64,000 nucleotides of DNA from IMG/VR virus record IMGVR_UViG_3300009370_001221, positions 1-64,000 of that record. One strand, 5' to 3'. Shown in pieces: positions 3,305 to 26,839 of the stretch. Positions within the stretch are counted from its first letter, which is position 1; the number at the start of each line of letters is the position of its first letter. The position numbers and the translations under genes are program-made. Below the pieces are notes generated by a model. It did not search any database. It was not told the DNA's origin and saw only the letters and a list, made by a program, of their open reading frames with translations.

Positions 3305-3761
3305 TGCCTACGTAATCGTCAAATAATCCATGTATAACATCTACAGCATTTTGAAAATCTTCAAATACCCAATTAACATTTGCCCTAATTAAAGGATGCT
3401 CTGTTAAGTACTCATCATCTGTTACTAATATAATAGGTTTCTTTAAACCAATTGCCCAACCAATCTCAATAGTTGTACCATAAGATGGCCGACGTTGGTT
3501 TAATTCACGTGGCATATATGCAAGAATTAAATCACACTTTTCTGTGTCATACCAATTCTTTGCCGCTATTGCTCCGGGGGAATTGTAACGTGGGTCGTTA
3601 CCTGGGCCGTATGTTTCTCCTTCCATAGGCTCACAACGTAGTGGGGAAATTCCAATTATGTTTGTGTGTAATTTATCACGAACATAACTGCGCCAGTCGT
3701 TTGCTTCCTGATAATTGCATTGCGCTATCGGGCCAGCAAGGTAAATATATTTTTTAGTCAT
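3297..3761 (-). CDS. Nucleoside 2-deoxyribosyltransferase family protein
   Basis: IYLAGPI, CDLILAY and SYGTTIEIGWA motifs. Confidence 0.85.
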   Translation of the reverse strand: MTKKYIYLAGPIAQCNYQEANDWRSYVRDKLHTNIIGISPLRCEPMEGETYGPGNDPRYNSPGAIAAKNWYDTEKCDLILAYMPRELNQRRPSYGTTIEIGWAIGLKKPIILVTDDEYLTEHPLIRANVNWVFEDFQNAVDVIHGLFDDYVGNG

Positions 3762-4574: not shown

Positions 4575-5498
4575 ATGAAGTTAGATTTAACCAAACAATA
4601 TATTGACTTAGAAACTGTTAATAAATTTATTGAATACAATTCTGATTTTTCTGACGTAAGACCTATACCAAATCCACATTTAGACGTAGTGTTTATGAGT
4701 TATAATGAGAAAGATGCTGATAAACATTATAAATTATTAAAAAAACGTGTACCTAACGCTAAACGTGTAAATGGTGTTAAAGGAATACTTAATGCGTATA
4801 ATGCGTGTAGGGAAATAACAGAAACTCCATACTACTTTATAGTTGAAGGAGATTCTATGGTATGTAAGGATTTTAACTTTAAACCACCGCAAAAATGGAC
4901 TAAACACTTAACCACATTAACTAATGACGAAATTAGTTATGAATATGTTAAAAGAAAACATAATATTAATTGGAATTCATTAAATCCGGTAAATGGTGAG
5001 ATACTTAATCATAGTCCTGTGGCTTTAGTTTGTAAAAGCACAAACAATTATAACTTATTTGAAAAATTCAAACTGCCTAATAATTATGACATCGATAATA
5101 CATATGAAATATTTGATGAAACTATAATTGAGGAAGATTATTGGAAAATGTGGGGTTCATGGCAAGAAAATAACATAGCAAGCATAAGTTTTTTTAATAC
5201 CTCGCCATATGACTCATGGAAAACAGGATTTAGAATTGGAAATAGACTAACTTATAAACTTCTTAATGAGACAAATAAACAAAACCATAATGATTATACT
5301 ATAAGATTAGATAAATGGTCTAGTGTAGGATATGAGCAAAAAAATGGTAAATACTGTATAGAAGGAGTGACATACGGCATAAAATGTGCTAAAATATGTA
5401 ATAATTGGATAGAGGAATACAGAAATACTTCAGACAATTATGATTGGTTAAGAGAAACTTTTGAGAAAGAATATGGAACACAACATAATACTAACTGA
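4575..5498 (+). CDS. Glycosyltransferase-like protein (GT-A fold), paralog of 12812..13549
   Basis: DVVFMSYNE...AKRVNGVKGI...FIVEGD motifs shared with 12812..13549; start reassigned to the ATG 5 nt after TAAATA. Confidence 0.6.
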   Translation: MKLDLTKQYIDLETVNKFIEYNSDFSDVRPIPNPHLDVVFMSYNEKDADKHYKLLKKRVPNAKRVNGVKGILNAYNACREITETPYYFIVEGDSMVCKDFNFKPPQKWTKHLTTLTNDEISYEYVKRKHNINWNSLNPVNGEILNHSPVALVCKSTNNYNLFEKFKLPNNYDIDNTYEIFDETIIEEDYWKMWGSWQENNIASISFFNTSPYDSWKTGFRIGNRLTYKLLNETNKQNHNDYTIRLDKWSSVGYEQKNGKYCIEGVTYGIKCAKICNNWIEEYRNTSDNYDWLRETFEKEYGTQHNTN

Positions 5499-17323: not shown

Positions 17324-17905
17324 TTGCTACCTAAATTGAATAACTTTTTCATTGACCCTGATATTTGCTTTGACGTGAGCAAATTACAGGATGCATTGCG
17401 CGAAGTTGATTCGCGAGTCGCAAGACAATCTCCTTTAGGCAAAAGAGACATCAATGCTATTTGTCTGACACAAATTCCCGGTGATCCAAACTCTATCACA
17501 GGTGGTAATGTAAGAGGATTATTTTGGACACGCCCAACAAGCAGTGGTGAAGAGGTCCAACGAGAAAATCCAATAGACGAATCCCAATATACTGAGTTTG
17601 TTAAACTATTTGAAGATACTTACTTCAAAGAAGTATACGATACACTTATTCCCAATTATAAATTAGGCAGAGTAAGATTGCTTTGGAAAATGCCACGCAC
17701 AACATTGAGTTGGCACAGGGATCCTGAACGCAGATTACACATACCTATCGTAACCAACCCAGGCGCACTAATGATTATTGATGATGAAGTAAAACATATG
17801 CCCGCAGATGGCAAAGTATGGATTACTGATAATACAAAATATCATAATGCGTTTAACGGAGGCGAGGAAGATCGCGTCCATTTAGTTGCTACAGTTATAG
17901 AATAA
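17324..17905 (+). CDS. Asp/Asn beta-hydroxylase-like oxygenase
   Basis: WHRD, RLHIPIVTN and HNAFNGGEEDRVHLV. Confidence 0.8.
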   Translation: MLPKLNNFFIDPDICFDVSKLQDALREVDSRVARQSPLGKRDINAICLTQIPGDPNSITGGNVRGLFWTRPTSSGEEVQRENPIDESQYTEFVKLFEDTYFKEVYDTLIPNYKLGRVRLLWKMPRTTLSWHRDPERRLHIPIVTNPGALMIIDDEVKHMPADGKVWITDNTKYHNAFNGGEEDRVHLVATVIE

Positions 17906-17936
17906 GGAAAGGCCCTAAACGGGCCCTTCCAAAAAA
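17906..17936. terminator. GC hairpin between the convergent oxygenase and tmRNA units
   Basis: GGAAAGGCCC-TAAAC-GGGCCCTTCC followed by A6. Confidence 0.55.
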
Positions 17937-18114
17937 GCAGATTGGGTAACAAGGTATGCTCTATACCCCGGAATACTGCCGTGATTAAGCGGCTAATGCG
18001 TATTCGTAATAATCGTCGTTTGCAATTATTTTAGTTTGCTGTTTTTTAACATGGAACTGCTCCCATGTGTCGTCCGTATATCGTCCTCACCCTGTCGAAG
18101 CCATGTCACCCCCG

Positions 18115-18258
18115 TCAAAAAAAGATTAAGTATACTATACCACCAATAATAATTATGTCGGCACAGATACTCCATGCGACATATATTTTAAACATATATT
18201 CTATAGCTTTCCTGAAAGGCCTTGGTAATGTTTTTATCTTGTTCCGGAGGAATCGCAT
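18115..18258 (-). CDS. 47-aa basic/transmembrane peptide inside the tmRNA intervening segment
   Basis: AGGAGG-8nt-ATG; MRFLRNKIKTLPRPFRKAIEYMFKIYVAWSICADIIIIGGIVYLIFF*; stop codon ends 1 nt before tmRNA G1. Confidence 0.65.
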   Translation of the reverse strand: MRFLRNKIKTLPRPFRKAIEYMFKIYVAWSICADIIIIGGIVYLIFF

Positions 18259-18292
18259 CGTCGCTTCCTCCTATCAATGTATTATAGTTCAT
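18188..18292 (-). CDS. Possible 34-aa ORF in the tmRNA intervening segment
   Basis: AAGGAGA RBS right after CCA; MNYNTLIGGSDDAIPPEQDKNITKAFQESYRIYV*; overlaps the 47-aa ORF out of frame. Confidence 0.35.
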   Translation of the reverse strand: MNYNTLIGGSDDAIPPEQDKNITKAFQESYRIYV

Positions 18293-18372
18293 TTTAATCT
18301 CCTTTTGGTGGAGGTGGTGGGGATCGAACCCACGTCCAGAATGCATATTGTCTACATCATACGACAATAAAG

Positions 18373-18546
18373 TTACTTACTTATTTTCTTTTCTTCATAT
18401 AAAACATGTTTGCGTACAACTGGGTCATACTTTTTTAATTTAAGTTTATTGCCACCCATCTTTCTTTTATTAACGGTTGTGGTATAATAATGCCCGGTAC
18501 CAGCAGTTGATACTAATTTAATAATTGTAATATTTTTACTTGCCAT
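18373..18546 (-). CDS. rpmG: 50S ribosomal protein bL33 (zinc-independent form)
   Basis: Hand translation: [57 protein letters not shown], with IKLVSxAGTGHxYTT and [10 protein letters not shown] signatures; TAATG overlap with the upstream gene; absent from ORF track (57 aa). Confidence 0.95.
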
Positions 18547-21347: not shown

Positions 21348-22427
21348 ATGAATCCAAATCATAAATTCTTCTGCATAGAACCATATGTTAGTATGTCAAT
21401 AACAGAACCTGGCAAGGTATTTTGTTGTTGTTTACATGAAGGAGGTAAAGTAACTACTCCTGACGATGTATGGAATGATCCTTACCTTAAAGATATTAGA
21501 GCAAAATTTGACCGGGGAGAAATACCAGAAGAATGTGAAGGTTGCGTCGAAAACGAAAAACATAGTGACGGACGCTCGAGTAGAAGACTAGACGTTAACA
21601 GAAATTGGTTAAAACTACATAATAATTATGAAGATTACATCGATTCTGATGCTCCATATAGATTTGATTTTTGGGTAGGTAATTTATGTAATTTAGCATG
21701 TAATACATGTACATCTTATTATAGTTCAACATGGAATACGTTACTACAAAGACCGGCTGGCCATGATAGAAATCACAGAAACAGCATTGATATAAAAGAA
21801 TGGAAACCTATTACTGAAGATCCTCCAAACATTGATTATAAAAATTTAGAATGGATACATTTTAATGGTGGAGAACCATTACTCACAGCTACTCATCTTA
21901 AAACTTTAGAAAAAATACCAAAAGAACAACGAAGTTCAGTACGAGTAGAATATAATACTAATGGTACAGTAAAAGTAGATACTAATAGTGAAAAATACAA
22001 AATCTTTAAAGAATTTAGATCAGTTACCATGACATACAGCATAGATGGCATAGATGATGTTTTTGAAGAAATTCGTTGGCCGGCAAAATGGAATAAAGTA
22101 AGAGATAATATAGATAATTGGGTTGATCAAGTATGTGCAACTAAAGTAAGTGACAATTGGTTTTTTATGATAGGATTCAATTTAACAAAATCAGCATATA
22201 ATTACGATTCAATTAATGAAACAATAGACTACATCAAAGAAAGATGGACTGAACCTGTAAAAAATTATCTCATTCCGGAATACAAAAATTGGAACTATTA
22301 TGATATGATATTCTTATGCAACGATCACAGATCTATGAATTTTACCGATAAAGATTTTGAAGAATTTACACAAACCAAAGAGTTCATACGTGAAAAAGAG
22401 TTAATTGATCGGTTAAGAAAACGATAA
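21348..22427 (+). CDS. Radical SAM protein with N-terminal SPASM/twitch-like domain
   Basis: CNLACNTC (CxxxCxxC), GGEPLL, YNTNGT and SIDG; extra N-terminal Cys cluster. Confidence 0.88.
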   Translation: MNPNHKFFCIEPYVSMSITEPGKVFCCCLHEGGKVTTPDDVWNDPYLKDIRAKFDRGEIPEECEGCVENEKHSDGRSSRRLDVNRNWLKLHNNYEDYIDSDAPYRFDFWVGNLCNLACNTCTSYYSSTWNTLLQRPAGHDRNHRNSIDIKEWKPITEDPPNIDYKNLEWIHFNGGEPLLTATHLKTLEKIPKEQRSSVRVEYNTNGTVKVDTNSEKYKIFKEFRSVTMTYSIDGIDDVFEEIRWPAKWNKVRDNIDNWVDQVCATKVSDNWFFMIGFNLTKSAYNYDSINETIDYIKERWTEPVKNYLIPEYKNWNYYDMIFLCNDHRSMNFTDKDFEEFTQTKEFIREKELIDRLRKR

Positions 22428-22526: not shown

Positions 22527-22958
22527 ATGACTGAGTATAGAATCACTGCGGGAAATCTTATCCCCACACTTAACCGACACATGGTCGGATTCGATCGCTT
22601 ATTTGGCGATATGGACAGGCTTTTTACACATCAAGCACCGTCCTACCCACCCTACAATATTGAACGCATCAGCGACTCTGAGTATGTAATTACCATTGCC
22701 GTTGCTGGGTTTTCTCAGGGTGATCTTTCAGTAACTGTTGATAATGGACAATTGACTGTCGCTGGTCACAAAGAGGACTCAGACGAACAGAATTGGCTAC
22801 ACAAGGGCATCGCAACACGCGACTTCAGACGCTCTTGGAACTTGGCAGAATATGTCGAAGTTGTATCGGCAGTATGCAAGGACGGAATGTTAAAGGTTAG
22901 TCTTAAACAGGAAGTACCTGAAGCACTGAAGCCAAAGGAGATCGAAATTAAGTTCTAA
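22527..22958 (+). CDS. ibpA: Small heat shock protein Hsp20 (IbpA-like)
   Basis: GFDRLF, SYPPYNI, AVAGF, HKGIATRDF and DGML. Confidence 0.95.
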   Translation: MTEYRITAGNLIPTLNRHMVGFDRLFGDMDRLFTHQAPSYPPYNIERISDSEYVITIAVAGFSQGDLSVTVDNGQLTVAGHKEDSDEQNWLHKGIATRDFRRSWNLAEYVEVVSAVCKDGMLKVSLKQEVPEALKPKEIEIKF

Positions 22959-23020: not shown

Positions 23021-23341
23021 TTAATATTTTCGTTTACGATGGATGGAATTTTCAGCAACTTCTTTTAAATGTCGCTTACGGGCAATGTCTTTAGCACGTT
23101 TTCTTGCAATACTAGGTTTTTCATATTGTTCACGAGCTTTTAAATCTTGTAATTTACCGGAATTGGCTACTTTCTTTTTAAATTTGCGTAAGGCTTTATC
23201 CACATCACCATTTTGCACCCAAACTTTAAGTCCAGATATTTTTACTGGACTAACTTTATAATCTATTGGTTTTCTATAAGGTTTCTTTCCACCTCTATTT
23301 TTATCCCAACTTGTATTTTTATTATTCCAATCCCGTGCCAT
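23021..23341 (-). CDS. rpsU: 30S ribosomal protein bS21 with N-terminal extension
   Basis: VQNGDVDKALRKFKKKV...REQYEKPSIARKR. Confidence 0.92.
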   Translation of the reverse strand: MARDWNNKNTSWDKNRGGKKPYRKPIDYKVSPVKISGLKVWVQNGDVDKALRKFKKKVANSGKLQDLKAREQYEKPSIARKRAKDIARKRHLKEVAENSIHRKRKY

Positions 23342-23733
23342 TATTCCTCCAATTGTTTTATAGGCTCTATAATACTTTCTATTCTATTTGTGTTAAATAA
23401 TCCTACTAGTTTAGCAGTTTTATCATCACACTTATAATAACAATTACTCTTACTTAATAACCAACCAAAGCATATTGCATCTCTCTCTACTTTTGCCCAT
23501 TTAAGATTAAATATTATTATACTACATCTTAGAGCTGTGTCAAGCATCCATTCTGTATCTCTCTCGGGAGTCATATCATTTATTGCTAAACAGCACTCTG
23601 CATCTATATTATCAAGTACTAATATTAATTCACTTTGTTCGTCTTTACTAAAACCTGATATTAATATGTTTACATCAGCACCATAATATCTATCTGGTGG
23701 TGTTATTATTGTTAATTTATCCGCCGAGGACAT
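23341..23733 (-). CDS. Hypothetical protein
   Basis: IITPPD N-terminal motif; coupled to neighbours. Confidence 0.6.
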   Translation of the reverse strand: MSSADKLTIITPPDRYYGADVNILISGFSKDEQSELILVLDNIDAECCLAINDMTPERDTEWMLDTALRCSIIIFNLKWAKVERDAICFGWLLSKSNCYYKCDDKTAKLVGLFNTNRIESIIEPIKQLEE

Positions 23734-25723
23734 CTTGTCTGCTTAAATAATTTTGTAAGAACTCTTGTTCCTCATCTGTAAACTCTTCTATGTTTACACC
23801 ACTATTTAAGCGAGTAAGTAAATTATCTACCTGTTCCTGATTAAAATTAGCAGTATTTTCAGCACCAGTTAGTTTAGTTTTTAATTGTGCTATTTCTTTT
23901 TCTAACTTTTTAACTTTTTTCTTATCCTCTTTTAATACTACTATGGGAGTGCCTTCTAATTGCTCTGTTTCTACTACAGTTTTTTCTACTATTTTTTCAA
24001 CTTCTACCGGAACTTCCTTAATTACTTCTACTTCCTTAATTACTTCTACAGGAACTTCCTTCTCTACTATTTTCTCAACTTCTACAATTTTTTCTACAAT
24101 CTTTTCAACAGGAACTTCTACCTCTTTAATAACTTCTTTAATAACTTCTACTGGCACTTCTTTTTCTACAATTTTTTCAACAATTTTCTCTACTTCTACT
24201 TCTTTAATTACTTCTACTGGAACTTCCTTCTCTACTATTTTCTCAACAATAACTTCTTTCTCAACAGGAACTTTTACTTCTTTAATGATTTCTTTAATTA
24301 CTTCTACAGGAACTTCTTTTTCAACAACTACTTCCTTTTCAACAACAACTTCCTCTATTCTCACTGTTTCTTCCTGGTTAGAATCCTGCTTCGGCCCAGC
24401 GTGGATCGGTCTTTTTTTTTCGGAAGGATCTCTAAAACGTTTTAATGTCATATTACCAGCAACAACTAATAATACTGCAAGTGGATCAAATACAAATATA
24501 ATTGTAATAATTACCCAACGTACTGCTTCTTCTAATAAATCACGTGTAACATTAGATCCGTATACTAAACCAGCAATGTATTTAATAGGCCCTACTTCTA
24601 CTTCTAACTGGCGTACTTCTGTAGCAAGTACAAAACGTTGCTCTTTAAGTGTATCTATCTGTGTATAGTAATCTTCTATTACTACTTCTAATTCATTTAC
24701 TTTTGTTTCTACTTCATCTGCTTTCATACCCATTTGTTCTTGAAGTTGTTTAATTTCAGCATTAGCTTCATCAATTTCTGATTGGGTATTTTCACGCAAT
24801 TGTGCTATTTTATTTTGATGTGGTCGAATAGCAACTGCTAATGCTTCGCGCAATGCAGTAATTTCTGTTTGCACTTCATTTGAGATGGCAAGTTCATCCT
24901 GCCTTATACCATCTATCTCTTGCTCAATCTCTCTAATTTTAAATGCCAAGGCCTCTCGCTCGGGTTTTTGTTTTTCACGCAATTCTTTACCACGCTTAAT
25001 CCAATCAATCGGTTGTCCCCATGTCCGCTTCTCTACGCCTTTATCTACATATGCTTGAACTTCTTTATCTAATTGTGCTAATTGTTGATTTATACGGTCT
25101 ATTGCTTGTTGTTTAACAGCAACATCATCACGCACACGATCTATAGCATTAGACACTCGTTGTTCTTGTATAGCAATATCTTTTTCTAATTGCGCTCTTA
25201 ATGCTGTTATTTGTTGATTCTCTTGGCTAATACTACTGCTGACTCTACCCCAAGCACCATCACGTATTTCTTCTTGTTGTTCAATAGCTGAGGCAATATT
25301 TGTATTATGCTGACCGTGATCTTTACTTTGCAACCGCTCTATTTTCTCTTTAGTAACATTTACTCGCCCAGTAAATCGATTAATCTTTTCATTAATACGC
25401 TCTACTTTTGCTTCTGCTTGTGTTGTATTACTTGTTTGCTCTACGTGTGCTTTGGATAAAAAGCCAAAGATACCCATAGACGTAATGAACATTAAGACAA
25501 CAACTGCTATAGTAAGATAATACTTTAGAAATTTTGGTATGCGAGCCCAAAACTGGTAGAGCCACGAGGCAGTTACTAACTTACCTATCTCTAATACTAC
25601 ACCCATAATTGCTATAGGCACAGCGGCCGCGGCAAATATTGCCATTAAGCCAATAATACTATAATATGCGGCAACGGCGCTGATCGACAGCGCCGTCAAC
25701 AGAACAAATATTCCAAACTTCAT
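23717..25723 (-). CDS. Membrane-anchored long coiled-coil protein with C-terminal V/E/K/I/P repeats
   Basis: N-terminal TM helices, long heptad region, GPIKYIA...VFDPLAV TM, repeated EKIVEKEVPVEVIKE. Confidence 0.75.
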   Translation of the reverse strand: MKFGIFVLLTALSISAVAAYYSIIGLMAIFAAAAVPIAIMGVVLEIGKLVTASWLYQFWARIPKFLKYYLTIAVVVLMFITSMGIFGFLSKAHVEQTSNTTQAEAKVERINEKINRFTGRVNVTKEKIERLQSKDHGQHNTNIASAIEQQEEIRDGAWGRVSSSISQENQQITALRAQLEKDIAIQEQRVSNAIDRVRDDVAVKQQAIDRINQQLAQLDKEVQAYVDKGVEKRTWGQPIDWIKRGKELREKQKPEREALAFKIREIEQEIDGIRQDELAISNEVQTEITALREALAVAIRPHQNKIAQLRENTQSEIDEANAEIKQLQEQMGMKADEVETKVNELEVVIEDYYTQIDTLKEQRFVLATEVRQLEVEVGPIKYIAGLVYGSNVTRDLLEEAVRWVIITIIFVFDPLAVLLVVAGNMTLKRFRDPSEKKRPIHAGPKQDSNQEETVRIEEVVVEKEVVVEKEVPVEVIKEIIKEVKVPVEKEVIVEKIVEKEVPVEVIKEVEVEKIVEKIVEKEVPVEVIKEVIKEVEVPVEKIVEKIVEVEKIVEKEVPVEVIKEVEVIKEVPVEVEKIVEKTVVETEQLEGTPIVVLKEDKKKVKKLEKEIAQLKTKLTGAENTANFNQEQVDNLLTRLNSGVNIEEFTDEEQEFLQNYLSRQDVLGG
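23965..24360 (-). repeat. Coding tandem repeats (EKIVEKEVPVEVIKEV-like)
   Basis: Multiple imperfect copies visible in DNA and protein. Confidence 0.85.
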
Positions 25724-25758
25724 AATACATATTTATGCTATTTCCAAGCATAAATAAT

Positions 25759-25845
25759 TGGCTCCGGGGGTTGGGATCGAACCAACATTGCCCATTGGGC
25801 ACCCTATAAACGGTAGGGCCTGTATACCTATTCCAGCACCCCGGA
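25759..25845 (-). tRNA. Atypical tRNA, anticodon GUU (Asn), long variable arm, encoded CCA
   Basis: TCCGGGG/CCCCGGA acceptor, G73, CCA; D arm CTG-GAATAGGTATA-CAG; anticodon arm CCCTA-CCGTTTA-TAGGG; variable arm TGCCC-AAT-GGGCA; T arm GTTGG-TTCGATC-CCAAC; 87 nt. Confidence 0.9.
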
Positions 25846-25852
25846 TCATTTT

Positions 25853-26710
25853 TTATCGGTGCATATTTGCTACTATACCACGCAACTTATATTGTTCCAT
25901 CGCATGAATAAAACGTGTCATGCCTATTCCACCACCTACTCTTGGAATAAAATCTAATTGTAAAAAGTCATCTAGTTCTTTTGTTACACGATCTTTACCA
26001 AATGTTCCAAACAATAAATCTGCATACATACCATCACTAATTGTATGAAACATTTCTCGCATTTCAGTAGTGTCACTACTGCGCTCTGCTGAACCAATAG
26101 TTTCCATGCCCGCTATAATTACATCAATTTTTGCGGCCGTTCCGTCACCATTTTGTTTCATGTTCCAAAAAGGACTTGTGTAATTAGGGAAGTTTTTAAT
26201 CATGCAAACTCTACCTTGCCAATTCTTACACATTGCGTCTTCGTGCTCATGCTCGAGTTCTTGAACACCAAAATCCTCGCACCATGCAAGATAATCCTTT
26301 GCAACAACTCCACCCTTAGAACACCAACCTAAGTATTCCATAAGTTCTTTTTCCATTTTTTCTAAATCATTCATGTCACCTGGCATTTCAAATTCAAACA
26401 TTGGGAAAATTAAATCATGTCTACCTTCTACAACATTAGGTTCTTGCCTATAGGATGTTGAAACACAAAAAAACCCCGGGACATGGGGTTTAGTTAAAAG
26501 CTCGTACTCGAGCCACATTTGGCCAGTTTGTGGAAGTGGCCAAACTTCTCCGGCATAGTTATATGTTGCTACAGTTGTTGGATCTTCACACGCGGCTAAT
26601 ATTGATAATCTATTTTGAGTATGTACCTCTTCAAATCCTTTAGCCATAAAAAAAGACCTTAATAGGCCTGTGGCTTCAGTAAACTGTTGAGGGTTAATTA
26701 ATTGCGTCAT
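25853..26710 (-). CDS. Class IIb aminoacyl-tRNA synthetase catalytic-core protein (AsnRS/AspRS-like, no anticodon-binding domain)
   Basis: Motif 1-like LRSFFMAKGFEEVHT, LPQTGQMWLE, motif 2 SYRQEP...RHDLIFPMFEFE, ETIGSAER, motif 3 GGGIGMTR; 285 aa from the GGAG-preceded ATG at 26710. Confidence 0.85.
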   Translation of the reverse strand: MTQLINPQQFTEATGLLRSFFMAKGFEEVHTQNRLSILAACEDPTTVATYNYAGEVWPLPQTGQMWLEYELLTKPHVPGFFCVSTSYRQEPNVVEGRHDLIFPMFEFEMPGDMNDLEKMEKELMEYLGWCSKGGVVAKDYLAWCEDFGVQELEHEHEDAMCKNWQGRVCMIKNFPNYTSPFWNMKQNGDGTAAKIDVIIAGMETIGSAERSSDTTEMREMFHTISDGMYADLLFGTFGKDRVTKELDDFLQLDFIPRVGGGIGMTRFIHAMEQYKLRGIVANMHR

Positions 26711-26839
26711 TCTTATTCTCCAGTCAAATTTTTTTAGGCGCAAGACAAGCCGCCTAAACTGTTTTTATTTATACCTTTTCTTTATTATAGTACAATTAAG
26801 TCAAGTTATTATTATATCAGAAACCACTTTAAATATTAT

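Follow-up and report, generated by a model that had tools for sequence, protein, structure and literature searches.

A phage tRNA gene with an asparagine anticodon, a long variable arm and a synthetase-like partner gene in marine T4-like phages

What is the role of a phage tRNA that combines an asparagine anticodon with an anticodon loop and a body which do not belong to an ordinary tRNA-Asn? The question was raised by a gene found on the minus strand at positions 25759–25845 of the window, a 64,000-nucleotide stretch (positions 1 to 64,000) of the IMG/VR record IMGVR_UViG_3300009370_001221, derived from a marine T4-like phage. A sequence-only reading had noted the loop C-C-GUU-U-A, the class II body, five perfectly paired stems and an encoded CCA. 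It had proposed that the gene was not a decayed pseudogene, and that the RNA escaped the queuine and t6A modifications and perhaps anticodon nucleases, or worked outside the ribosome, or was mischarged, for example with Ser or Leu at AAY codons. The observation itself was confirmed by our analysis, whereas its interpretation was only partly supported.

ARAGORN called a single tRNA in the window, and in the whole 235,363-bp genome, at 25759–25845 (minus strand) with anticodon GTT. The 87-nt cloverleaf showed a 7-bp acceptor stem (UCCGGGG/CCCCGGA), a 3-bp D stem (CUG/CAG), an anticodon stem (CCCUA/UAGGG), a variable arm with a 4-bp stem, a T arm (GUUGG/CCAAC), and a discriminator G followed by CCA. 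The minimum free energy fold was exactly this cloverleaf, and the five stems do pair perfectly if the D stem is counted as 3 bp, the class II type. The anticodon loop, C32-C33-G34-U35-U36-U37-A38, corresponded to positions 25807–25813, with the anticodon at 25809–25811, position 33 at 25812 and position 37 at 25808, so that C33 and U37 are real. A shifted anticodon (UUU or UUA with a displaced loop) was rejected by inspection, as the alternative stems do not pair. The 15-nt variable arm (25787–25801) was made of the stem GCCC/GGGC and an AAU loop. The 3' acceptor strand CCCCGGA, the discriminator G73 (25762) and the CCA (25759–25761) occupied positions 25759–25769. The general tRNA model of Rfam (RF00005) did not match the gene at its gathering score, nor at E<10. 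The best hit in the clan was tRNA-Sec (RF01852) with 21.1 bits against a cut-off of 47, and this identity was rejected since the gene has 7/5 acceptor/T helices and a GUU anticodon instead of the 8/5 or 9/4 helices and UCA anticodon of tRNA-Sec.

An assembly error was ruled out. Two other IMG/VR contigs carried the tRNA letter for letter, and a contig assembled from DNA runs of other studies covered positions 25600–26204 with no difference inside the tRNA. A covariance model built from 36 relatives found the gene at 93.1 bits. This score is by construction, as the window copy was part of the seed, but 37 extra loci that ARAGORN missed or that were not in the seed scored 62–88 bits. Compensatory changes across the family were observed in 17 of 20 base pairs. 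The gene is thus far more than a chance sequence, and these changes, together with the identical independent contigs, exclude a pseudogene.

The gene belongs to a family of at least 58 distinct RNAs in marine T4-like phages, here called tRNA-star, which includes the annotated "tRNA-Asn" of Prochlorococcus phages P-SSM2, P-SSM5 and P-SSM7. G34 and U35 were present in 58/58 members, U36 in 57/58, U1-A72 in 57/58, G73 in 58/58 and CCA in 55/58. In contrast, position 33 varied freely (U in 42, A in 9, C in 5 and G in 2 members) and position 37 was mostly U (U in 48, A in 7, G in 2 and C in 1). The variable arm was 13–38 nt long, the long versions being capped by GCAA, except in two members where it was 6 nt. 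U33 was therefore found in 42/58 members and a purine at position 37 in 9/58, as compared to 41/41 and 39/41 in ordinary tRNAs from the same phage loci (Fisher P=1e-4 and 2e-16, respectively). This is the direction expected if the RNA works outside ordinary ribosomal decoding, as the sequence-only reading had suggested among other possibilities.

The same frequencies bear on its other suggestions. The window copy lacks U33 and A37 and cannot be a substrate of TGT or of t6A modification. However, C33 is not a special adaptation, and escape from TGT cannot be the selected trait because most members keep U33-G34-U35. Colicin-E5-type recognition is likewise not what the conserved trait avoids. No defence or nuclease genes were seen beside the tRNA, and an escape or decoy role, in which the RNA would evade or soak up such nucleases, explains neither the synthetase-like partner described below nor the Leu-type body. 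We consider it quite unlikely. Mischarging with Ser, Leu or Tyr by host synthetases recognizing the class II arm, with insertion of that residue at AAY codons, is suggested by the long variable arm and the Leu-like D arm. But G73 is an antideterminant for LeuRS and TyrRS, and C2-G71, present in the window copy, is an antideterminant for SerRS (PMC9976931). In addition, the acceptor stem is of the Asn type and two members lack the long arm altogether. This recoding hypothesis is very unlikely.

The sequence-only reading missed the partner gene entirely, as well as its link to pyrimidine genes. A spacer of 7 nt (25846–25852, minus strand) separates the first base of the tRNA from the stop codon of an upstream gene, called X (25853–26710, minus strand). 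X encodes a 285-aa class IIb aminoacyl-tRNA-synthetase catalytic core, AsnRS-like and devoid of an anticodon-binding domain. Its start was taken at the Met that matches the homologues, the mechanical ORF running to 26743. Seventy-three of 85 related loci carried the tRNA directly behind X, with a spacer of 4–11 nt in 66 of 67 related loci, whereas about eight T4-like loci had X but no adjacent tRNA-star. No indel tracking the length of the variable arm was seen in the N-terminal half of the X alignment. Metatranscriptome contigs covered positions 26078–26270 and 26521–26741. Two nucleotides after the CCA, a perfect 10-bp inverted repeat with a 7-nt loop (25730–25756, minus strand) was observed, 6 nt before the ATG of the next ORF (23717–25723). 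It may be a processing or 3'-end hairpin, but it is AT-rich and was not listed by the terminator scan.

This arrangement would be compatible with an RNA accessory of the X gene, the tRNA-like structure defining and stabilizing the 3' end of the X mRNA through RNase P/Z processing, or binding X as an allosteric cofactor or regulator by analogy with synthetases that need tRNA in order to activate their amino acid. The spacing of 4–11 nt in 66/67 loci, the hairpin that follows and the existence of X without the tRNA in other lineages are in favor of this possibility. It remains doubtful, as a processing element would not need GUU, U1-A72, G73 and an encoded CCA to be kept across 58 variants whose stems have diverged freely.

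X matched PF00152 at 53 bits, over the core only, and phrog_29758. A profile comparison with PDB sequences gave AsnRS and archaeal AspRS at 1e-14, and the best structural matches of the AlphaFold2 model (pLDDT 94.7) were AsnRS/AspRS cores. The motifs QTGQMWLE and FEFE are of the AsnRS type and lack the AspRS lysine, residue roles being taken from established AsnRS/AspRS structures. They were identical in the phage, CPR, Pyr-linked and giant-virus copies of X.

X was also found in very different contexts. PyrD-X and X-PyrF fusions arose in at least three separate clades, X being fused or adjacent to PyrD, PyrE and PyrF in giant viruses and bacteria. PyrD(1A)/PyrE-PyrF/X clusters occurred, and PyrE was next to X in two CPR loci. 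In one Bacteroidota order, all 3 X-containing genomes out of 81 lacked PyrB, which was present in 70/78 of the others. With seven more large X-containing genomes, 10/10 lacked PyrB (P=1e-8), and none had a PyrC at cut-off level. X is found in Aureispira-type Bacteroidota genomes that lack ATCase and canonical DHOase, and in one of these X-containing genomes X was located on a contig of more than 2.28 Mb. Of 50,697 phage records, X and a P-SSM2-type PyrE occurred together in P-SSM2, P-SSM5 and P-SSM7 and in no other cultured phage.

The association with pyrimidine genes was not observed everywhere. In Patescibacteria, PyrD was present in 2/6 genomes with X against 95/301 overall. A complete 716-kb Saccharibacteria chromosome had X but no PyrD, PyrF or PyrB, and three of the genomes examined had X without PyrD or PyrF. 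In the genome of the window, about 67% complete, no PyrD or PyrF was found and the single PRTase is not a PyrE orthologue. Furthermore, no tRNA-star was detected near X or elsewhere in the bacterial genomes and giant-virus contigs that carry X, and the RNA is therefore not intrinsic to the reaction of X. Other roles for X were considered. A general replacement of AsnRS in CPR bacteria was rejected, since only 6/301 sampled Patescibacteria have X and all five genomes examined have GatB. An ATP-driven dihydroorotase acting on carbamoyl-aspartate is disfavored because genomes with X lack PyrB, the only source of that substrate. A plain asparagine synthetase is also disfavored, as four of five CPR genomes with X lack AsnRS, so that free Asn would have no translational use there, and X resembles AsnRS more than it resembles archaeal asparagine synthetase A.

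The main alternative is a private translational pair, in which X would be a minimal AsnRS recognizing only the acceptor end and the class II body, and tRNA-star its dedicated decoder of AAY codons. This would be useful in hosts making Asn-tRNA only by the slow two-step transamidation route, and the pyrimidine neighbors of X in other lineages would then reflect a second use of the enzyme. The AsnRS-like active site and predicted fold, the conserved GUU, G73 and CCA, and the operon-like coupling agree with it, and the conservation of GUU is also what a decoding tRNA would show. Moreover, tRNA-star is the only tRNA of the genome, and Asn makes up 6.06% of the phage codons (3074 AAT and 1088 AAC), although it is not an outstanding codon class. 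However, U33 is present in only 72% of the members and a purine at position 37 in 16%, while A37 is needed for t6A on ANN-reading tRNAs. Nor does this reading explain why X is repeatedly fused to PyrD or PyrF, stands in for PyrB/PyrC in Bacteroidota, or tracks PyrE among phages. We regard it as possible but rather unlikely.

We tentatively favor another model, without holding it to be more likely than not. In this view, tRNA-star is a natural chimera, made from the same transcript as X, in which a tRNA-Leu-type class II body carries the acceptor stem, G73, CCA and GUU anticodon of bacterial tRNA-Asn. It keeps exactly the nucleotides read by the asparagine enzymes: the anticodon and G73 for AsnRS and non-discriminating AspRS, and U1-A72 for the GatCAB amidotransferase, these being published identity elements (PMC9976931). 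It has lost the two loop features that the ribosome and the loop-modifying enzymes need, and is best read as a carrier of an aspartyl or asparaginyl group, not as a normal decoder. Its partner X, in this view, is not a general translation enzyme. We propose that tRNA-star is loaded with Asn, either by X through the acceptor end or by host ND-AspRS plus GatCAB, and that X holds the activated asparaginyl group (Asn-AMP or Asn-tRNA-star) and converts it, with CO2, into dihydroorotate. This would provide an entry into pyrimidine synthesis that bypasses the feedback-controlled ATCase step. The analysis establishes the RNA family with its conservation rules, its physical coupling to X, the AsnRS-like motifs and modeled fold of X, and the genomic link of X to pyrimidine genes. 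The amino acid used, the enzyme that loads it, any aminoacylation by X, the formation of dihydroorotate and the participation of tRNA-star in that chemistry are inferences, and no biochemical datum exists.

A more specific and more speculative version, which we hold to be unlikely, is a tRNA-dependent, ATCase-independent entry into pyrimidine synthesis. The phage would supply a non-decoding tRNA-Asn look-alike on which host ND-AspRS and GatCAB, or X itself, build asparagine. X would then turn the activated asparaginyl group plus CO2 into dihydroorotate, for example through an N-carboxyanhydride that the side-chain amide closes into the six-membered ring, the product feeding PyrD, PyrE and PyrF. 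In bacteria such as Aureispira, and in giant viruses, the same enzyme would use free Asn or the ordinary tRNA-Asn, and replace ATCase and dihydroorotase.

If the favored reading is right, a very abundant marine phage gene pair, with more than 8000 protein clusters and hundreds of IMG/VR loci, has been misfiled for twenty years as "tRNA-Asn plus tRNA ligase" and is in fact an auxiliary metabolic module. It would also imply an unrecognized way into pyrimidine synthesis, bypassing the classic feedback-regulated ATCase/DHOase steps and used by phages, giant viruses, some CPR bacteria and free-living Bacteroidota. The tRNA would have evolved away from the ribosome while keeping its aminoacylation identity, and would be of interest for tRNA biology and as a natural orthogonal scaffold. 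Even under the translational alternative, an AsnRS with no anticodon-binding domain working with a Leu-bodied tRNA lacking U33 and A37 would be an unusual aminoacylation system. Searches of the available literature found no paper on this gene pair or on such a pathway.

The comparison with known systems shows both the borrowed and the distinctive parts of the pair. No tRNA-dependent step is known in pyrimidine synthesis, and here it is only inferred, but an aminoacyl-tRNA serves as an activated metabolic intermediate in the transamidosome converting Asp-tRNA(Asn) to Asn-tRNA(Asn), the identity elements of which are kept by tRNA-star, and in the C5 tetrapyrrole pathway with Glu-tRNA. Truncated synthetase paralogues with non-translational functions, such as archaeal asparagine synthetase A (AS-AR, 3p8t), AsnA, EpmA/GenX, HisZ and GluQRS, illustrate the recruitment of a catalytic core without anticodon-binding domain to metabolism or modification. 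AS-AR is the nearest in size and ancestry, but X matched it far more weakly (2e-6) than true AsnRS, EpmA was matched at 5e-5, and the NCBIfam scores were far below the cut-offs (23.6 bits against 389 for asparagine synthetase A and 13.5 against 286.9 for EpmA/GenX). None of these paralogues has a dedicated tRNA gene or pyrimidine-gene fusions. With the catalytic domains of AsnRS and archaeal/eukaryal-type AspRS (e.g., 1x54, 2xti, 8h53, 3nel, 1asy), X shares the predicted fold (TM by query of 0.70–0.76), motif 2 SYR.E..RH, the E.E pair, the Q..Q..LE strand, D..E..GS.ER and motif 3 GGGIG..R. It lacks the N-terminal OB-fold anticodon-binding domain, the sequence identity is only about 18–20%, NCBIfam asnS scored 28.6 bits against a cut-off of 342.6, and the X family is found in viruses, a few CPR bacteria and some Bacteroidota.

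On the RNA side, bacterial tRNA-Asn has the same GUU anticodon, U1-A72 and G73 and a nearly identical acceptor stem (UCCGGGG in the window against UCCGGAG in a Saccharibacteria tRNA-Asn), and it is the best-scoring class I tRNA for the family model. The canonical molecule, however, has U33, A37 (t6A), a 4-bp D stem and a 5-nt variable loop, none of which is present in the window copy. With bacterial tRNA-Leu, tRNA-star shares the D arm (GGUGG.GAAUUGGUAGAC-type), the 3-bp D stem and the long variable arm, and tRNA-Leu genes were the top hits of the family model in cellular genomes (58–74 bits), but tRNA-Leu has G1-C72, A73 and Leu anticodons, and G73 blocks LeuRS (PMC9976931). The closest system is that of phages P-SSM2, P-SSM5 and P-SSM7 (Kyanoviridae). 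Their copies have U33, no encoded CCA and a different, compensated acceptor stem sequence, and the public records treat the two genes as an ordinary tRNA-Asn and an unspecified ligase. The two-gene module is nevertheless the same, with an X protein 61–62% identical and, directly behind it, an 85–88-nt GUU tRNA with a long variable arm, U37, U1-A72 and G73.

ARAGORN identified a single tRNA in the whole 235,363-bp contig (35.8% G+C), an IMG/VR virus record estimated at 67% complete and carrying a T4-type major capsid gene; the window is the first 64 kb of this contig. The tRNA was located at window positions 25759-25845 on the minus strand, with the anticodon GTT. Direct reading of the sequence showed a 7-bp acceptor stem (UCCGGGG/CCCCGGA), a 3-bp D stem, a 5-bp anticodon stem, the loop C-C-G-U-U-U-A, a 15-nt variable arm with a 4-bp stem, a 5-bp T stem with a GUUCGAU loop, a discriminator G and an encoded CCA. 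The minimum-energy fold was exactly this cloverleaf. The Rfam tRNA model did not detect it, and the only hit was tRNA-Sec at 21 bits, far below threshold. The sequence-only reading, which had described a class II body on an Asn anticodon with C33 and U37 in the loop, was therefore accurate as an observation. The sequence was not an artefact, as two further IMG/VR contigs carried it identically and a contig from DNA runs of other studies covered positions 25600-26204 with no difference inside the tRNA.

A 668-aa ORF (23717-25723, minus strand) started 36 nt after the CCA of the tRNA. It had no family match beyond a sub-threshold baculovirus PEP hit, and it was not conserved at this place in other phages. 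Just downstream of the module lay a ribosomal protein S21 gene (23021-23341, minus strand; PF01165, 57.5 bits, with the domain at residues 40-91 of 106), an Hsp20 gene (22527-22958, plus strand) and a radical-SAM gene (21348-22427, plus strand). A phage-encoded two-piece (permuted) tmRNA was present at 17903-18417 on the minus strand, with scores of 119.7 bits for the Rfam tmRNA_permuted model and 99.6 bits for beta_tmRNA, and ARAGORN gave two overlapping tmRNA calls with different tag peptides.

Seven nucleotides upstream of the tRNA, on the same strand, ended an ORF (25853-26710 from the conserved Met) encoding a 285-aa class II (D/K/N) synthetase catalytic core and nothing else, with no anticodon-binding domain. 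This protein, called X, forms its own family. It matched phrog_29758 at 394 bits, scored far below cut-off against asnS, aspS(ND), archaeal AsnA and EpmA, and had no PDB hit by single-sequence search. A profile of 57 family members found eukaryal/archaeal-type AsnRS and archaeal AspRS at about 1e-14, whereas archaeal asparagine synthetase A came in at 2e-6 and EpmA at 5e-5. An AlphaFold model (pLDDT 94.7) superposed best on AsnRS and AspRS catalytic domains, with TM by query of 0.70-0.76. The alignments showed the motif-2 arginine (SYR.E...GRH), the E.E pair (FEFE), Q..Q..LE (QTGQMWLE), D..E..GSAER and motif 3 (GGGIG..R). In established AsnRS/AspRS structures, L-E in place of the AspRS K-Q, and E.E in place of D.E, are the asparagine-type signatures, and the assignment of X to this type is inferred from them. 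One X homologue of 498 aa carried a LAGLIDADG_3 domain (PF14528), which suggests an intein or homing-endonuclease insertion.

The pair constitutes a conserved and abundant module. IMG/VR holds at least 598 loci with X, and the metagenomic protein collection holds more than 8000 clusters. A covariance model built from 36 distinct tRNAs found the RNA, here tRNA*, at over 60 bits directly behind X in 73 of 85 loci, including versions of about 100 nt that ARAGORN missed. The stop codon of X and the tRNA 5' end were 4-11 nt apart in 66 of 67 cases, and 17 of the 20 modelled base pairs showed compensatory double changes. Some T4-like loci (L018/L019, L031-L034, L048 and L051) and two huge phages of 735 kb and 484 kb (L003 and L004) had X but no tRNA* within the flanks retrieved, and L018 instead had five ordinary tRNAs just upstream of X.

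Among 58 distinct tRNA* sequences, G34 and U35 were found in 58, U36 in 57 (with one GUC), U1-A72 in 57, G73 in 58 and an encoded CCA in 55. Position 33 was U in 42, A in 9, C in 5 and G in 2, whereas position 37 was U in 48, A in 7, G in 2 and C in 1. The exception with the Asp anticodon GUC (locus L024, 3868-3966) had G37, and ND-AspRS would still read it but AsnRS would not. The variable arm measured 13-38 nt, and 6 nt in two members. In L069, L052, L080, L053 and about 20 other loci, versions of about 100 nt had a variable arm of 27-38 nt ending in a conserved GCAA tetraloop, and ARAGORN missed all of them. As a control, the 41 distinct ordinary tRNAs found in the same phage loci were examined: all 41 had U33 and 39 had a purine at position 37, differences corresponding to P=1e-4 and P=2e-16, respectively. 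The C33 of the window is therefore one state of an unconstrained position, whereas U37 is the family norm.

Outside the T4-like phages, an exhaustive search of representative proteins gave 437 clusters at E<=1e-10, nearly all of 260-380 aa. Some of them were fusions, either PyrD(class 1A)-X, in at least nine 90% clusters, some on giant-virus-like contigs with RING, IF4E, TBP and thymidine kinase genes, or X-PyrF, with PyrE and PyrD next door. On a family tree these fusions fell in at least three separate clades, with the T4-like clade nested among them. A scan of one genome per prokaryotic species found 263 loci, many of them CPR/Patescibacteria chromosomes with X at about 60% identity, including a complete 716-kb chromosome; none had tRNA* beside X. 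Clustering of the neighbours of these loci showed a sole class 1A PyrD directly upstream in 7 loci, a PyrE-PyrF fusion in 10 loci (Aureispira/Chitinophagales-type genomes) and PyrE next to X in two CPR loci. In CPR, DnaX lay downstream in 15 loci and a dihydrouridine synthase (Dus) gene lay just upstream on the same strand in 14 loci (L122, L116, L165 and 11 others). Dus is a flavoenzyme related to PyrD that acts on tRNA, although this arrangement may only reflect local synteny. In one Nomurabacteria locus (L123, 6815-9094), X was followed 5 nt later by an argininosuccinate-lyase-type gene (306.8 bits, above cut-off) and then by a cytosine-deaminase-like amidohydrolase, another pyrimidine or Asp-nitrogen theme. 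The active-site motifs of X were the same in all four settings (phage, CPR, Pyr-linked and giant-virus copies), and one biochemical activity is therefore expected.

The link with pyrimidine synthesis was tested in a sample of 81 genomes from the order of the Aureispira-type genome, three of which carried X, in one case on a contig of >2.28 Mb. ATCase (PyrB) was found in 70 of the 78 X-negative genomes and in none of the three X-positive ones (P=0.0019). With seven more large X-positive Bacteroidota genomes, 10 of 10 lacked PyrB (P=1e-8). Most X-negative genomes had two DHOase-type hits of 260-360 bits, whereas the X-positive ones had at best 217 bits, below the 279-bit cut-off, or none. In these genomes the PyrD next to X was the only strong PyrD. 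Five further large Bacteroidota genomes (G365, G396, G405, G418 and G431, from the order of genome G311) lacked both PyrB and a cut-off-level PyrC yet showed no X at E<=1e-25, and could be auxotrophs, incomplete bins, or carriers of a divergent X. Among 50,697 phage records, X occurred in the Prochlorococcus phages P-SSM2, P-SSM5 and P-SSM7 and in three huge uncultured phages, and a P-SSM2-type PyrE occurred in the same three cultured phages, in six single-cell virus fragments and in one other huge phage. Among cultured phages the two genes therefore co-occur exactly. These results support X as the entry enzyme of a route to dihydroorotate or orotate that does not use ATCase and DHOase.

Other observations speak against this link. 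In Patescibacteria, X was rare (6/301) and was not enriched with PyrD (2/6 against 95/301, the latter tally including one unpublished genome, G159), and several CPR genomes had X but no PyrD or PyrF. The partial genome to which the window belongs showed no PyrD, PyrF or PyrE orthologue. Of the five CPR genomes examined, the two with PyrD and PyrF were also the two with AsnB, which is suggestive but concerns only five genomes.

The analysis establishes that tRNA* is a selected, structured RNA, genetically welded to X, which keeps its asparagine identity but not its decoding features, and that X is an AsnRS-like core of the adenylating type genomically tied to pyrimidine synthesis. The remainder, including every catalytic step, is inferred from sequence and genomic context and not from biochemistry. 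We propose, tentatively, that tRNA* carries Asx on its 3' end, loaded either by X through the acceptor end or by host ND-AspRS plus GatCAB, and that X then channels the activated asparaginyl group into dihydroorotate. In one chemically plausible, hypothetical route, Asn-AMP or Asn-tRNA would react with CO2 to give an N-carboxyanhydride, and the side-chain amide would attack the carbamate carbonyl to give dihydroorotate, which would need only ordinary alpha-carboxyl activation. Because X works without tRNA* in cells and giant viruses, where no tRNA* was found, the RNA would be a phage-specific addition, and it may serve to obtain asparagine in hosts whose only asparagine synthesis would be tRNA-bound. 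The main rival explanation is a private translational AsnRS/tRNA pair, which explains the invariant GUU, but neither the loss of U33 and of the purine at position 37 nor the pyrimidine associations of X. The interpretation given in the sequence-only reading was only partly supported: the RNA is not a pseudogene and is probably not an ordinary decoder, as it had suggested, but its proposals of mischarging and of escape from modification are not supported, and the partner enzyme, which appears to mark an undescribed entry into pyrimidine synthesis, had been missed.

The gene pair itself was already known, although unstudied, and what is new here is the definition of its unusual rules. P-SSM2, P-SSM5 and P-SSM7 carry X at 61-62% identity, annotated as "tRNA ligase", with an 85-88-nt "tRNA-Asn" directly behind it. 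In the P-SSM2 GenBank record (AY939844.2) the tRNA-Asn feature (PSSM2_199) is placed at positions 5325-5410 of the locus L001 taken from it, inside CDS PSSM2_205, about 2 kb away from L001 position 3313-3400, directly behind PSSM2_198, indicated by ARAGORN and the covariance model, and the feature coordinates look stale. In cellular genomes the best matches of the covariance model were tRNA-Leu genes (58-74 bits), canonical tRNA-Asn was the best class I match (55.8 bits), and the acceptor stem is almost that of a bacterial tRNA-Asn. The invariant nucleotides are exactly the published identity set, in which the anticodon plus G73 serve AsnRS and ND-AspRS and U1-A72 serves the amidotransferase, whereas G73 is an antideterminant for LeuRS and TyrRS, and C2-G71 for SerRS (PMC9976931). 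tRNA* is thus a chimera, in which a Leu-type body carries the acceptor end and anticodon of tRNA-Asn.
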